The notes: generated by a model not told the origin, from the letters alone. 63,047 bases of DNA, filler included, from Reticulomyxa filosa (GCA_000512085.1; 17 parts of 17 records of this genome joined end to end with filler, not necessarily neighbours in it); one strand, 5' to 3'. Shown: positions 50,488-56,118, numbered from the whole stretch's first letter. Made by a program: numbers and translations.

Positions 50488-51735
50488 AAAAAAAAGAAAA
50501 AAAAGAAAAAAAAGACAAGCAAACACAAAAGAAAGCACGTTTGCAAAAAAAGGATAAGTTTGACAAGAGATTCCACACACTGGACAAAGAGGGATTGAAA
50601 ATCATCGACCACCTATTGCAAGACGGCACCTACTACTTCCTGGTCCAAGGCAACTTGTGGAATGACATTAAACTCGAATGTCACGACCATGAGCACCTTC
50701 CACACAAAAGCAACTTCACGACAACAATGACAACAATGACAACAACAACAACACCATCACCATCACCATCGCCACCACCACCACCATCATTATCAATGAG
50801 AACAACAACAACAACAACAATGGCCTCGAATCCGACTGAAATTTCCGTTTGGTGCAAACATCAACATATTCAAAAGTCCCGATTGCACGATCACTATTGT
50901 CGTTACTTGCAAGAGCACTCACTCGACTATGTTCCTTCTTTTTTTTTTTTTTTTTTTTTTTATCTCTTTATCTAATGCATTTGCATTCTTCAAACATAAT
51001 CAATCTTCCCTCAAATAAAATAAAATATATACATATATATATATGCTTTGCATTCAACATATCCTCTCAATTGGACCCAACAGAATCTTATGGACAGGTA
51101 CATACATATATGTATATATGTATATATACATATATACATATATATACATATATATACATATATATATGTATGTGTATATGCATATGTAATGGACTTGTTT
51201 GATTGTGTGCGTATGTATAAAGAGATGATATATACTATGTGGAGAAAGTGATTGGACACAAAGGCGACAAAGTCGGGTCTCGCGAGTTTTATGTGAAATG
51301 GGAAAATCACCGCTTTTCGAAAAGCGACGACGACTGCCTGCAGCCAGAGGAGAACATGATTGGATGCGAAGTGTACGAGCGCTATTGCGTGAGTCGCAAT
51401 ATTCCCTATCTGTACAAAGACGAAGGCACCTTCGAAGTGCGCATTGTCTTCCCGCCGCTCCACAACCCGTCTGGCGCTTCCATTGCCAGGAATTACTCGC
51501 CTCTCGATAATGATAATGATGACGATGATCCTTTGTCGTCGGACGTATCCGTCTCCGACGGAGTTTACAACGTGGATGATGATAGTGACGATAACGATGA
51601 ATATGATTACGACTACGATGGTAGCGATGGTAGTGATGGTAGCGATGGTAGCGATGATAATGCAAATGGGGATGATATGCTCATGGATCCCCGTCAAATT
51701 GATAATGCCACACATCTTCACAAAGTTTATATATA

Positions 51736-51773
<38 letters not shown>

Positions 51774-53858
51774 CATACATATACATACATATATATGTAT
51801 ATGTGTTTGAAAAGAAAAGGAAGAAGCGAGCCAACAAAGAGAACGAGAAAGAAAAAGAAAAAGCAAAAGCAAAAGCAAAAGCAAAACGGACAGAGAAAGT
51901 GGGTTCCAAAGCAAAATGACGAGTGAGGAGTTGAAGATGAAGATAGACGCGGAGCGCAAAAGAATCGAGCTGAAGCAGCAACACGAGTCGTGTTCCGTCC
52001 AATTGAAAGTCGACCCGGTGTCCACCAAATTCTTACGTCACATCCATCTCTCTTTCCAAGACTGGCTCACGCACTTTGCAACACGGTCCGCCCATTCCAA
52101 ATTCATTGACATTCAAATGCTTATGCATGCCGACATTATCCTCTGGTTTATATACATATATACATATATATATATATATATGATGGATATATGTATATGG
52201 GTACATTGCCTTGTTCTGTTCTCTATGTCGTTGATTGATTGGTAAAAAAAAGTGTCGGTGCGAGTGGAAGCGGCAAAACAACGCTGTTGAAGAACTCGAA
52301 AGCGTTTTGCAGGGACGTAAAGTTTTCGCCATCGTCGCCAGAGGGCATACGCTGGGGCCCCACCCAGTCGGTGATTTCGCACTTTGAAAATGCGAAGAGG
52401 GGACGAGAGTTATTGGGCAGCATCGGACTCAACAGCGTGCCTACGTGGCTGTCACCCTTTCCTGTTCTGTCCACCGGTGAAAAATATCGTGCTAATTTCG
52501 CTCGCTTATTGCAAGGTATTATTATACAAAATATATATATATATTTATATATATTGTATATGCACATATATACCAATATATATATATGTATATATTAGAA
52601 GCGTTGCAGTTCGCTGATACAAAGAACTACATAATAGCAATCGACGAGTTTACGTCGGTGTTGGATCGACAGACTGCTCGATGCATGTCGATGTCGATAT
52701 CAAAGTTTATCCGCAAAGCAAATAAGTTGAGACGCAAGGCGAGCATGACGAAGCTTTGTCCGTTTTTCTTGTTGAGCAGCAACACGGATATCATCGCGTA
52801 TCTGCAGCCGTCGTGTCTGATCATGTTGGACGCACAGGGCAATCCAAAGGTGTTTGACAAACAGGCCATTGCAAACATCGACGTGCAAGTCGTCGTCGAC
52901 TGGTCCGAGGCTGACCATATCATCGAGCCCTTTTCCGTTCTCTCATCATCATCATCATCGTCATCCTCTTCGTCATCCTCTTCTGTGTCCCATGATACCA
53001 ATAACAATGATAATGACGATGTAATATTTGTAGCCACCAAAACAAATACAAATGCAAATGTAAATGCAAATGCAAATGCAAATGCAAATGACGCAAGTGA
53101 AAAGCACGTATACAGACCTGTTCCTGCCGTCACACGTGTCCATGAACTTTCTTGTCGAGTGCAACTGGATCTCGTCACGTCCAAAGCCGCAAAGACCTTT
53201 GATTACATTTTTGATGGCAATACAATTCTTTTTCTATATGTACATTACACTTTTTTTTTTTTTTTTTTTTTTTTTTGGAATATATATATATTTTTATATA
53301 CATATATATACATATATATATATATGTATACGTACATATATATGTACATATATGTGTATATGTATTACGTGCACGTTAAATTGTGGAAACTTAGGCGTAA
53401 TTCGCACAACGGTGGCATATTTAAACGGAACAACGAAACTCATGGACATAGTGAGCACAAAGAGCTTTCGCGTAGGCGTGATAGTCGGGTGCAGTGGGTG
53501 CGGCAAGACAACGACGGCGAAGACGCTGTTTGGCGATGCCATGGACCTTTCGCATATGTGGCGGCCTGATGTGTCGATCTTGAGCTACTTTCGAGACTTG
53601 AGTACCGCCGAGGAGCTGTTCGACGCCGTCGGCATCCCTCCTCGTCTCTGGATGAAAACCTTCTTCCAACTCAGCGAAGGCGAAAAGTCGCGCGTCGAAG
53701 TGGCACTCGTCCTTTTGCAAATGCGCTTTCACGATTACAGTCTCAATCCCAATAAGTTCTTTGTCTTTGACGAGTTCACGTCCTACTTGGATAGACCCTC
53801 TGCGCTCGCCGTCGCTATCGGGGTTAACAATTATGTCATGCGACACAATCTCCAACGG

Positions 53859-53912
<54 letters not shown>

Positions 53913-55055
53913 TATACATACATATATATATATATAATTAAATAGATTGGTGTTGTTGTGTTGTTATTCGGACGTTGTCGACAAACAATGCTTTGAACAC
54001 TCATTGGCGTTTATTGTGGACATGGTTGCGAATCAAATCATCTACATCCCCGATGGCAAACCTGATGCGCTTTCCCGCGTCCCCCCTTTCGTCTCGCGTC
54101 TGGCGGATCTAGATGATGTGTCCATTCTGTCTCCGCAAGGACATGAGTCCGCACGCTACAATCGGCTCTTCCATGGTGATATACAAACTGTTTCCAAACA
54201 CTTTAATGTTCCTAAAATCTGGTATTTGAAAAAAAAAAAAAATAGATATATACATATATTTATATATATATATATATAATATATGTACATATATATTTAT
54301 ATATAGGTTGTATTTGGAACGATGTCATCGCTTTTGGTTCTCGCCACTGTTTTCAAAGTACCATTATTTGACGCAGACGATATTCGGTGGTGCCACGTGC
54401 TGGCTTATCAAAGCGGTGTTTGCCGACGCGAACGTGACGCCGGACCACGACAAAGTTCAGCGGGCACGCTTTACGGCAAGGGACAAGAAAGTGTTCAAGG
54501 ACTTGGAGTATCCCGTGGAACTGGTCGGGTTCATTTCCTCCATTCACCACTTTGGGCTGCGCTTTGATCAGAGAGAACACAGAACCGTCATTCTCCCCAA
54601 CTATCAAGGTCTGGGCTTTGCTAGTCGCGCTGCCGACGCTATCGCCGAAATATACGCAAGGCATGGACAGACATTCCTGAGCAAGACATCTCATCCGGTT
54701 TGAATGCTTTCTTCCCTCCTTTCTTTTTCATTTAAATAAATAAATATATGTATATATACATATATATATATATTTATTTATTTATTTGTTTTATTTGTTT
54801 TATTTGTTTGTACAGAGATATGGCAGATATCGTGACATGTCAATACTGTGGTCTGAGACCATATCGAACCACAAAAAACAGGTCCTCGCGGCATGGGACC
54901 GCTCTTCTCCGAAATTCGCTGAAGTCAAAACAAGAAAGAAATTTTATTCGCACTTTTTCAAATTGCCAAAAGAAAGAGATAAAAATGCGCAGCAATATCT
55001 TGAGTCGCGTGTTCTCTTTATCAATCAAGATACAAAAAAGATTAAACAAAAATGA
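50488..55055 (+). CDS. Chromo-like + chromodomain + 2x soluble ABC ATPase + GNAT acyltransferase fusion, 10 exons, 5' partial
   Basis: In-frame exon model 50488-50930, 51084-51097, 51223-51724, 51820-52145, 52253-52515, 52599-53216, 53395-53857, 53946-54221, 54307-54697, 54816-55055. Motifs: YVEKVIGH..FYVKW..QPEENM; GASGSGKT/LSTGE/IDEFTS; GCSGCGKT/LSEGE/FDEFTS; HYL, RTVILPNYQGLG, KTSHP. Confidence 0.8.
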
Positions 55056-55983
55056 TTTCAATGGTTCTTTTTTTTTTTTTTTTTTTGTGATGTGTGTCTT
55101 GCGAAACACTGAATTGGGTTATTTATTTTTTTTTTTTTTTTTTGTTTAGCTGTTTTGTTTGTTTGTTTGCTCAACAACGAAAAAGATTACTCCACACAAT
55201 ATGTTCCTTCACACAGTCTCTCAATAAAACAAACAATTACGTTTTTATTTAAATTTGTTTTTCATTTCAGCGGACAATGCTTGGATGACTTGTTCTTTGC
55301 TCAATTCATTAAATGAAGTGATTGTATAGTGTGTGGTACGGAAATCCTTTGAAAAGAGAGTTTACGCAAACAAAGAAAACAACGTATACTAAAACAGATA
55401 CACCGTTTTTTTTTTTGATCGAACAAGATTACGGCTGCAAAAACAGATTAGATGCGACACCTTTAGTGCTGATTGTTAGTTGCATTTTTAATAATAAAAT
55501 TGCTTGATAAGGAAAAAAAAATGTTTAAACAACCAAAAATTATCTTTATTTCCTGTTCCGGGCGGAAAAGCTTGAATGTAAGATATTGAACTAGTTGAAA
55601 GACTTTGCAGAAGAAGTTGAAAACAAATTGATTGTTTGAGACCTTTGTTGTTTTCACTTTTATATAACAAATAAAAAATCGATGCATTTTTGCATTTAAC
55701 AGACCACACAGTTTTTGTTTCTTATGAATAGTATTATTAGATCTTGTCTTTGTGAAGCAACAAGTACAATACTTAAAATATCTTGCAATTTATTTTACAA
55801 TTTTCATTAATTACGCTTTTAAATGCTTTAAAAAACATTGAACGCAAATTTTTCAATATTTTTAAACAGTAAAGTAAGATAAAACACATCTTTCAATGCT
55901 TGCTTTCAATTAAATCAAACAAGTTTAATATAACATTACTTTTCAAACAAAGCATTTTCATTTTTATTGAACAAAAAAGTAAG

Positions 55984-56118
55984 TTATCCCCAAATACGAA
56001 TGTGACCTTTGAATGAACCATAACATAAATTCAAATCATATTTAACATTATTAGTCTTTTCTTTCTTTTTCAATACGATAAATTTAAGACAATATATTCC
56101 ACCATCTTCTTTATCATC
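55984..56118 (-). CDS. 3' end of a WD40-family gene (expanded family)
   Basis: Reverse strand reads DDKEDGGIYCLKFIVLKKKEKTNNVKYDLNLCYGSFKGHIRIWG*. Confidence 0.8.
   Translation of the reverse strand, partial: DDKEDGGIYCLKFIVLKKKEKTNNVKYDLNLCYGSFKGHIRIWG

Follow-up and report, generated by a model that had tools for sequence, protein, structure and literature searches.

A chromodomain-containing tandem ABC–GNAT gene of Reticulomyxa filosa and its relatives in phages and protists

What might a eukaryotic protein do that joins a chromodomain to two ATP-binding cassette (ABC) ATPase modules and a GNAT acyltransferase domain, and to which proteins is it related? This question is raised by a locus of Reticulomyxa filosa (GCA_000512085.1) located in a window of 63,047 nucleotides, i.e., the whole stretch of DNA analysed, in which 17 parts of 17 records of this genome are joined end to end with filler. 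Three-frame translation of the piece at positions 50488–56118 reveals a single intron-rich eukaryotic gene of about ten exons on the + strand (50490–55055), whose soluble product would have at least about 1177 residues. The reading frame is open at the 5' edge of the piece, and the N-terminus of the protein may be missing. The ABC–ABC–GNAT core of this protein belongs to an uncharacterised protist family, and its nearest relatives outside that family are the single-cassette ABC–GNAT proteins of phages and prophages. The gene model described here was built from the genomic sequence and from comparison with homologues, and every search was made with single exons.

The ABC–ABC–GNAT core and its relatives

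Cassette 1 is spread over exons 5 and 6. Exon 5 (52253–52515) encodes the Walker A motif GASGSGKT (52257–52280) and the signature LSTGE (52467–52481), and exon 6 (52599–53216) continues with the Walker B/D-loop DEFTSVLDR (52643–52669), followed by a Ser-rich and NANA low-complexity linker and the start of the N-terminal beta part of cassette 2. The second cassette occupies exon 7 (53395–53857), which scores 31.6 bits against Pfam ABC_tran and contains GCSGCGKT (53487–53510), LSEGE (53670–53684), and DEFTSYLDR (53769–53795), and ends in exon 8 (53946–54221), which also encodes the linker to the GNAT domain. The GNAT core lies in exon 9 (54307–54697), with FSKYHYL at 54350–54370 and the acetyl-CoA loop REHRTVILPNYQGLGFA at 54572–54622, and exon 10 (54816–55055) adds the end of this domain and a conserved C-terminal tail (RYGRYRD...LW...KKFYSHFFKL) up to the stop codon TGA at 55053–55055. 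These motifs, together with REHRTVILPNYQGLG and KTSHP in the GNAT region, stand where a first-pass annotation of the same DNA had placed them. Both cassettes keep the Walker A Lys, the signature and the Arg that follows it, the Walker B Asp-Glu pair, and the D-loop. Exon 9 reaches 20.3 bits against Pfam Acetyltransf_1 (cut-off 20.7) and retains the family-invariant R, P, Q, G, and G of the acetyl-CoA loop (Q/RxxGxG/A). The exons contain no segment of transmembrane strength, the highest 19-residue Kyte–Doolittle mean being 1.22, in keeping with the annotation's description of two cassettes that lack transmembrane segments. An ABC transporter was considered, since the ABC fold is present, and ruled out for want of membrane-spanning segments.

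Both cassettes and the GNAT domain belong to the PHROGs family phrog_11143, which is listed as being of 'unknown function'. An open reading frame (ORF) of 356 residues in Pseudoalteromonas phage SL25 scores 334 bits against this family, exon 7 scores 59.2 bits (positions 38–161), and the GNAT exon 39.1 bits (E 8.7e-10; positions 242–301), the matches being collinear. Moreover, tblastn searches with exons 7 and 9 against 50,697 phage records both hit one set of phage genes, arranged in a shared order, at 31–35% identity and with E values down to 3e-13. The SL25 ORF matches exon 5 at 43% identity (E 3e-15), exon 6 at 35%, exon 7 at 36%, and also the GNAT exon. The view that the ABC–GNAT part belongs to a phage and prokaryotic family, that it ends in a GNAT domain, and that the ATPase has been duplicated is borne out: both cassettes match one and the same phage ORF and are 33% identical to each other. 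Relatives were counted at no fewer than 265 loci in IMG/VR and no fewer than 594 in bacteria or archaea; Planctomycetota are prominent, and Nonomuraea, Endozoicomonas, methanogens, and Woesearchaeota occur as well.

In an alignment of 40 sequences of this family, the near-invariant positions include the H-loop TCHxD and a PDW motif. Each cassette of the gene carries the family motifs GxSGxGK[ST], LSxGE followed by Arg, and DEFTSxxDR, and the C-terminal GNAT domain (HHYL, RxHRxVVLPxYQGxGxG) is collinear with the ABC part. Motifs and order are likewise shared with individual phage proteins, namely the unannotated SL25 ORF, gp75 of Arthrobacter phage EastWest, orf24/25 of Lactococcus phage P335, and the protein of Tenacibaculum phage pT24, at 31–43% identity per exon. 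However, the phage form consists of one cassette, has about 360 residues in all, and presumably acts as a homodimer, whereas the gene encodes two cassettes in one chain and long N-terminal regions. In addition, the phage gene usually follows a ParB_N gene, whereas the Reticulomyxa filosa gene has introns and a chromodomain in the same chain.

The genomic neighbourhood of the phage and prophage relatives is centred on DNA. All four GenBank phages inspected have a ParB_N gene immediately upstream of the ABC–GNAT gene and the gene for the large terminase a few genes downstream. Among bacterial and archaeal loci, a ParB-like (ParB_N) ORF is found directly upstream in 53 of 68, and scanning a member of the commonest cluster of downstream ORFs (16 loci) revealed a large terminase. 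This ParB_N partner is of the type fused to DNA methyltransferases (phrog_498, 185 bits; PADLOC MTase_II, 139 bits). In the IMG/VR loci most similar to P0055, a single-cassette viral member, neighbours include DnaB, a RecA-like ATPase, NinG, and DUF1376. Pfam finds no ParB_N in any exon of the gene, and, apart from a weak ABC match, PADLOC assigns the enzyme to no defence system.

In Streptococcus phage 315.4 (5866–7373), the ABC and GNAT parts carry separate ORF annotations, and a gene for an ASCH-domain protein comes next. ASCH proteins include an N4-acylcytosine amidohydrolase. As a recurrent neighbour, ASCH was discarded, being found at none of 160 other loci with that single query.

A comparative genomics study of 2021 (PMC7824862) cites an earlier analysis in which the phage family was predicted to make an acyl modification of a DNA base, and names Tenacibaculum phage pT24 for it. 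A strong match to the ABC–GNAT family is indeed found in pT24 (224 bits), in a protein whose accession differs from the one given in that study. The DNA acyl mark suggested by the first-pass annotation agrees with this prediction. The single-cassette phage family is, then, one with an existing prediction of DNA modification. A literature search on COG2401, or on an ATPase fused to a predicted acetyltransferase, found no paper; neither was any found on the tandem protist family or on the chromodomain-fused foraminiferal branch, the original prediction of 2013 in Nucleic Acids Research lying outside the coverage of the search.

The eukaryotic relatives emerged when 1.84 billion representatives (a 50%-identity library) were searched exhaustively by HMMER with exon 7. 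This search returned 574 representatives at E<1e-3, with an Elphidium transcript as the best match (E 1.7e-31). About 45 of the top matches are proteins of 650–1764 residues with two ABC stretches, from Elphidium margaritaceum, Nonionella stella, Durusdinium, Symbiodinium, Polykrikos, Gymnodinium, and MMETSP/EukProt transcripts, and none of them bears a protein name. Identity to exon 7 does not exceed about 45% throughout this library and, therefore, the gene's own protein and its close relatives are not represented in it. In exon-by-exon local searches, the order ABC1, ABC2, GNAT recurred in nearly all long homologues, and the C-terminal tail was matched in seven. Named examples are CAMPEP_0202728208 of Elphidium margaritaceum, EP01083_P097642 of Nonionella stella, CAK9023097.1 of Durusdinium trenchii, and the Polykrikos and Gymnodinium transcripts, which share the order ABC1, ABC2, GNAT, tail with the gene, are at most 38–44% identical to it over exon 7, and differ from it in their N-terminal regions.

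Two members of the family begin with a chromodomain, as the gene does. In the Elphidium protein P0001 (1594 residues), a Chromo match of 45.6–50.3 bits lies upstream of two ABC cassettes and the GNAT domain in a single ORF, and in P0185 (977 residues, from a Logan contig), a Chromo match of 24.6 bits is combined with the same core in a continuous ORF. The dinoflagellate members scanned in Pfam showed no chromodomain. The architecture is, thus, not private to this genome: the tandem family occurs in Foraminifera, dinoflagellates, and other protists, and the Chromo fusion recurs in P0001 and P0185.

The relationship between the tandem and single-cassette forms was explored with a quick IQ-TREE analysis of the region from ABC2 to GNAT (100 rows, 372 columns; unrooted), in which exons 7 and 9 were entered as separate rows. 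Each was placed in the same clade of 11 rows with Elphidium, Nonionella, and environmental tandem proteins, supported at 98 in the Shimodaira–Hasegawa-like approximate likelihood ratio test (SH-aLRT). The dinoflagellate clade has a support of 99, and the tandem proteins form one group (SH-aLRT 89), except for P0088, which falls just outside; three short environmental sequences, probably fragments, are also included. This group adjoins an IMG/VR viral clade that contains P0055 (clade support 97; joint node 89), and the ParB-linked phage and prophage sequences make up the other half of the tree. Such a topology would allow the tandem form to have arisen once, from a virus-like single-cassette gene, the donor and the direction not being shown. 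Of the horizontal acquisition proposed earlier, the kinship with phages stands, and the direction of transfer is not shown by an unrooted tree. An ABC-only FastTree analysis (135 columns) resolved too poorly to date the duplication of the cassette.

Several relatives have features of their own. In the viral subclade nearest to the eukaryotic proteins, the ParB_N partner is mostly absent, several members have replication or recombination genes (DnaB, NinG, DUF1376) beside them, and some contigs measure 128–368 kb. Tandem genes without introns are found on ENA BOEU19-1 scaffold_649 (P0004; 7815–10736) and TARA scaffold_2181 (P0007; 1712–4828), and both fall in the clade supported at 98 with the gene and the foraminiferal transcripts. 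Their contigs are gene-dense and consist mostly of ORFans, with Ras and SPRY as the only domains recognised; a giant virus or an intron-poor protist is possible and, if viral, these contigs would bear on how the tandem family spread. In addition, P0170 (Durusdinium trenchii CAK9076621.1, 2595 residues) combines a PP2C phosphatase region with the tandem core, either as a real fusion or as a merged gene model.

Exon structure, chromodomain, and modelled cassette pairing

The claim that ten exons splice in frame into one protein is upheld for most of the gene. The exon lengths sum to 3534 nt, a multiple of three, with an uninterrupted frame to the TGA. The nine intervals between exons consist of TA microsatellites and poly-T, with a GC content of 0.08–0.25 versus 0.38–0.53 in the exons, and all have GT...AG ends except for one GC donor at 53217. 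The split codons at the junctions, read by hand, are AGA, TGT, GAA, GGC, CGA, and TGG, with no stop among them. Prokaryotic contamination was ruled out, the coding segments being split by nine TA-rich intervals with splice-site ends.

Six of the nine junctions are crossed by continuous transcript-derived proteins of Elphidium and Nonionella. At the junction of exons 4 and 5 (IILC-VGASGSGKT), P0001 and the Nonionella protein P0008 agree with the gene (homologue LIVGESGCGKST), and at that of exons 5 and 6 (ARLLQ-E-ALQ...IDEFTS) the homologue reads ARLLKESQ...IDEFSS. The junction with the GC donor, 53216/53395, which the annotation had flagged for checking, gives FDG-VIRTTVAYL and agrees with P0008 (FEGKITTDIPYL). 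Exon 8 is joined on both sides in accordance with P0001, whose unbroken YRHGLRNIVFLACKYD and NVPKIRLVL fit its two junctions: RHNLQ-R-LVLLCCYSD on the side of exon 7 (homologue RHGLRNIVFLACKYD) and NVPKI-W-LYL on the side of exon 9 (homologue NVPKIRLVL). Finally, KTSHP-RYGRYRD, between exons 9 and 10, corresponds to KTGHPRYGGYRD in Elphidium and KTAHPRYGMYRD in Nonionella.

Exon 1 (50490–50930) is an open frame up to the 5' edge of the piece, with a GT at 50931, and contains a Lys-rich stretch, a T/P-rich low-complexity insert, and the unit described earlier as 'chromo-like'. As exon 1 (phase 0) must be brought into the frame of exon 3, a putative mini-exon 2 of 14 nt (51084–51097; AG at 51082–51083, GT at 51098–51099) was proposed. 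This mini-exon is uncertain, with no homologue or transcript match, and direct junctions between exons 1 and 3 or another donor are possible alternatives; the link between exons 1 and 3 is, thus, the part of the ten-exon claim that depends on a guess. Exon 3 (51223–51724) encodes the chromodomain and then an Asp-rich acidic linker, and its donor, AAA|GTTTAT, resembles the other donors. Exon 4 (51820–52145), whose frame 0 is open from 51811, encodes a Lys/Arg/Ser-rich linker and the N-terminal beta part of cassette 1.

Low-complexity runs, in frame and with exon-like GC content, recur in the exons: a Thr/Pro-rich run in exon 1 (50720–50830), GSD repeats in exon 3 (51616–51656), and poly-Ser and Asn-Ala repeats in exon 6 (52949–53090). 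Downstream of the gene, the 3' flank (55056–56118) is AT-rich and contains only short low-complexity ORFs, with no gene, Rfam family, or tRNA found.

Of the two chromodomain units proposed in the N-terminal region, the clearer one is confirmed. The chromodomain proper (YYVEKV...FYVKWENH...QPEENM; 51233–51376, + strand) scores 25.4 bits against Pfam PF00385 in the first 60 residues of exon 3 (gathering cut-off 25.1) and 22.8 bits when the whole exon is used, and its best PDB match is the chromodomain of CDYL (7n27, E 1.1e-5). Among chromodomain proteins such as CDYL, CDY, and HP1, it aligns best with CDYL: the first Tyr of the aromatic cage and its Trp align, but the third cage residue is His, and Leu takes the place of the TWEP Trp. 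The degenerate first unit in exon 1 was not recovered: neither the whole exon nor its two halves give a Pfam Chromo signal, and no match is found in the PDB or in the protein atlas. The single-sequence AlphaFold model of this exon is unusable, with a predicted local distance difference test (pLDDT) score of 44.6. The lone hint, a local match to the helix at the C-terminal end of the Elphidium chromodomain, is at chance level (E 1.1).

Other N-terminal modules occur in the relatives. Cys-rich, Zn-finger-like modules lie upstream of ABC1 in P0001 (about 540–600) and P0008 (about 280–330 and 565–590), with weak Pfam C1_1 and Zn_ribbon matches and one P0008 stretch that appears to be of the RanBP2 type by eye. 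Modules of this kind were not seen in the exons of the gene.

The proposal that the two cassettes form an intramolecular ATPase dimer was followed up in a homologue. The two cassettes of P0008 (residues 603–845 and 865–1062) were folded with two ATP molecules in three runs, reaching an interface score from aligned errors (ipSAE) of 0.84 versus 0.09 for the best control, a mark that 51 of 78 solved complexes attain, as against 2 of 108 mismatched pairs. The three runs share at least 70% of their contacts, with a partner pLDDT of at least 87. In the models, signature 1 (718–722) contacts Walker A 2 (918–925), Walker A 1 (649–656) contacts signature 2 (977–981), and the D-loops lie opposite each other. 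The Nonionella cassettes are, thus, modelled as a canonical head-to-tail ABC dimer, the pass being a likeness rather than a proof.

Fold searches were made with an AlphaFold model of the single-cassette member P0055 (pLDDT 85; predicted template modelling score, pTM, 0.81), which combines a GNAT fold (Z 13.7) with the nucleotide-binding fold of transporter-type ABC proteins (Z about 13). The closest solved GNAT folds are 1y9k (Z 13.7), RimI (5isv, Z 13.1), and Naa50 (6yzz, Z 12.8), and further matches include Naa10 and entries for NatA, NatE, and Naa80. On this model, both folds are established, and the searches give no pointer to the substrate.

A candidate function and its rivals

The tentatively favoured reading is that of one gene encoding an ATP-gated GNAT enzyme held on chromatin, with a DNA base as the preferred acceptor. 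The two cassettes would pair head to tail within one chain, enclosing two ATP molecules, and this nucleotide-dependent clamp would position or gate the single GNAT domain, which would move an acyl group from acyl-CoA onto a chromatin-held substrate. It is by its chromodomain and Lys-rich stretches that the enzyme would reach chromatin, and its relatives would do so by their Cys-rich N-terminal modules. In the foraminiferal proteins, ATP probably serves as a slowly hydrolysed switch more than as a motor, because the H-loop histidine is replaced in both cassettes of the gene, by Asn in cassette 1 (LSSNTD; codon 52781–52783 in exon 6) and by Tyr in cassette 2 (LLCCYSD; codon 53965–53967 in exon 8). 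A DNA base is favoured as the substrate on account of the gene neighbourhoods of the phage family and the published prediction (PMC7824862), and this is the weakest step of the proposal. A bolder form of it, in which protists use a phage-derived tandem ABC–GNAT enzyme to write an undetected acyl mark on nuclear DNA bases (N4-acyl-cytosine or N6-acyl-adenine), with the foraminiferal chromodomain directing it to methylated chromatin and so coupling a histone mark to the mark on DNA bases, is unlikely.

Parallels exist for an acyltransferase that acts on nucleic acid bases. The GNAT-superfamily enzyme Mom of phage Mu, expressed late in the phage, acylates a DNA base (PMC7824862). Unlike the protein studied here, Mom has no ATPase domain; it is absent from the matches of the general searches, none of which was aimed at Mom. 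A mechanistic analogy is offered by the RNA cytidine N4-acetyltransferases TmcA, NAT10, and Kre33, in which an NTPase is coupled to an acetyl-CoA-dependent GNAT acting on a nucleic acid base, the ATPase being helicase-like in these enzymes versus ABC in the gene.

Several observations weigh against the favoured reading and keep it tentative. Firstly, the function of the whole family is a predicted one. Among the fold matches listed, none is annotated as nucleic-acid-modifying, and small-molecule or protein N-acetyltransferases are the closest. Moreover, ParB_N lies upstream in only about 17 of 74 cases among the 80 IMG/VR loci most similar to P0055. Secondly, the His of the H-loop TCHxD, conserved in at least 90% of single-cassette members, phage proteins included, is lost in both cassettes of the gene. 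The same position (cassette 1/cassette 2) is Asn/Lys in Elphidium and Lys/His in Nonionella, and the other tandem proteins retain His in the first cassette in 15 of 29 cases and in the second in 23 of 29. The dimer pass may merely mirror the resemblance of these cassettes to the many solved ABC dimers. Thirdly, the chromodomain is marginal (22.8–25.4 bits), with His at the third cage position. Finally, the junctions linking exons 1, 2, and 3, and that between exons 3 and 4 (51724/51820), fall in regions that cannot be aligned to homologues and remain models, and splice support as a whole comes from transcripts of homologues, not from those of Reticulomyxa filosa itself.

The most serious rival, itself somewhat unlikely, retains the same gene and the ATP-controlled GNAT but replaces the DNA base with a protein amine as acceptor, i.e., a histone tail or another chromatin protein and, in phages, a DNA-bound or packaging protein. 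The closest solved GNAT folds include RimI, Naa50, NatA, NatE, and Naa80, although these matches are generic and the small-molecule GNAT 1y9k scores as high (Z 13.7). Soluble ABC dimers that clamp protein complexes, namely PhnK/L (7z15) and the MCR A2 component (9h1l), are also among the fold matches, and the MYST family provides a precedent of chromodomain-bearing acetyltransferases that act on histones. On the other hand, the phage neighbourhoods point to DNA, with the methyltransferase-linked ParB_N, terminase, DnaB, and NinG, and the published prediction (PMC7824862) concerns a DNA base.

A second rival concerns the gene itself. Instead of one gene, the locus would hold two: a small chromodomain protein (exons 1–3) ending near 51919 and an ABC–ABC–GNAT protein starting at the in-frame ATG of exon 4 at 51916. 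Beyond exon 3, frame 1 stays open across the TA-rich stretch until a TGA at 51917–51919, which overlaps the ATG at 51916–51918, and a protein starting at this ATG keeps the entire N-terminal beta part of cassette 1, a further point that tells against a single gene. Moreover, most tandem family members show no chromodomain. However, the interval 51725–51819 has a GC content of 0.137, with a GTTTATATA donor and an AG acceptor that resemble those of the gene's other introns, and reading through it would give a peptide of Tyr/Ile microsatellite. The intron-like character of this interval, the lack of intergenic room for a promoter, and the fused single ORFs of Elphidium P0001 and of P0185 are the reasons for which the two-gene reading is rated low. 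By the same single ORFs, the chromodomain and the tandem core appear to belong to one protein, as the favoured reading of a single gene requires. The ATGA overlap at 51916–51919 is probably a coincidence in a eukaryote.

A third rival, that the enzyme acts on RNA or on the ribosome rather than on chromatin, is very unlikely. In its ABC part, the fold belongs to the transporter/ABCE1 type and not to that of SMC/Rad50. Fold matches to ABCE1 (3ozx, Z 11.6), ABC-F, PhnK/PhnL, and the MCR A2 component (Z 11.6–12.4) share this fold as an ATP-driven clamp, in some cases in tandem, and weak NCBIfam matches to ABC-F and RLI were also obtained. These clamps, which act on ribosomes or enzyme complexes, have no annotated GNAT domain or chromodomain. 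A further parallel is that TmcA and NAT10 also combine an ATPase with a GNAT domain. Nevertheless, no sequence or fold match to TmcA or NAT10 is found among the matches listed, the upstream region of the gene contains a chromodomain and Lys-rich linkers of nuclear type, and the phage relatives have DNA-metabolism genes as neighbours.

Finally, a decaying or catalytically dead copy, either a non-enzymatic scaffold or a pseudogene, is highly improbable: both H-loop histidines are lost, the chromodomain is marginal, the low-complexity inserts are long, and no relative above 45% identity occurs among the 1.84 billion representatives, but the frame of about 3.5 kb is unbroken over ten exons, the Walker A and B motifs, signature, D-loop, and acetyl-CoA loop are intact, and the expressed foraminiferal homologues share the losses of His (Asn and Lys in Elphidium).

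Possible meaning for the family and for protist chromatin

The analysis names a concrete and widespread enzyme family, present in phages, in prophages of many phyla, in archaea, and in protists, which is open to simple assays. The family also occurs in dinoflagellates, the chromatin of which is famously atypical. Should DNA or chromatin prove to be acylated by the enzyme, one more phage DNA-modification enzyme would have become a eukaryotic chromatin factor, and a new class of epigenetic writer, gated by ATP and based on a GNAT domain, would be added to those known.

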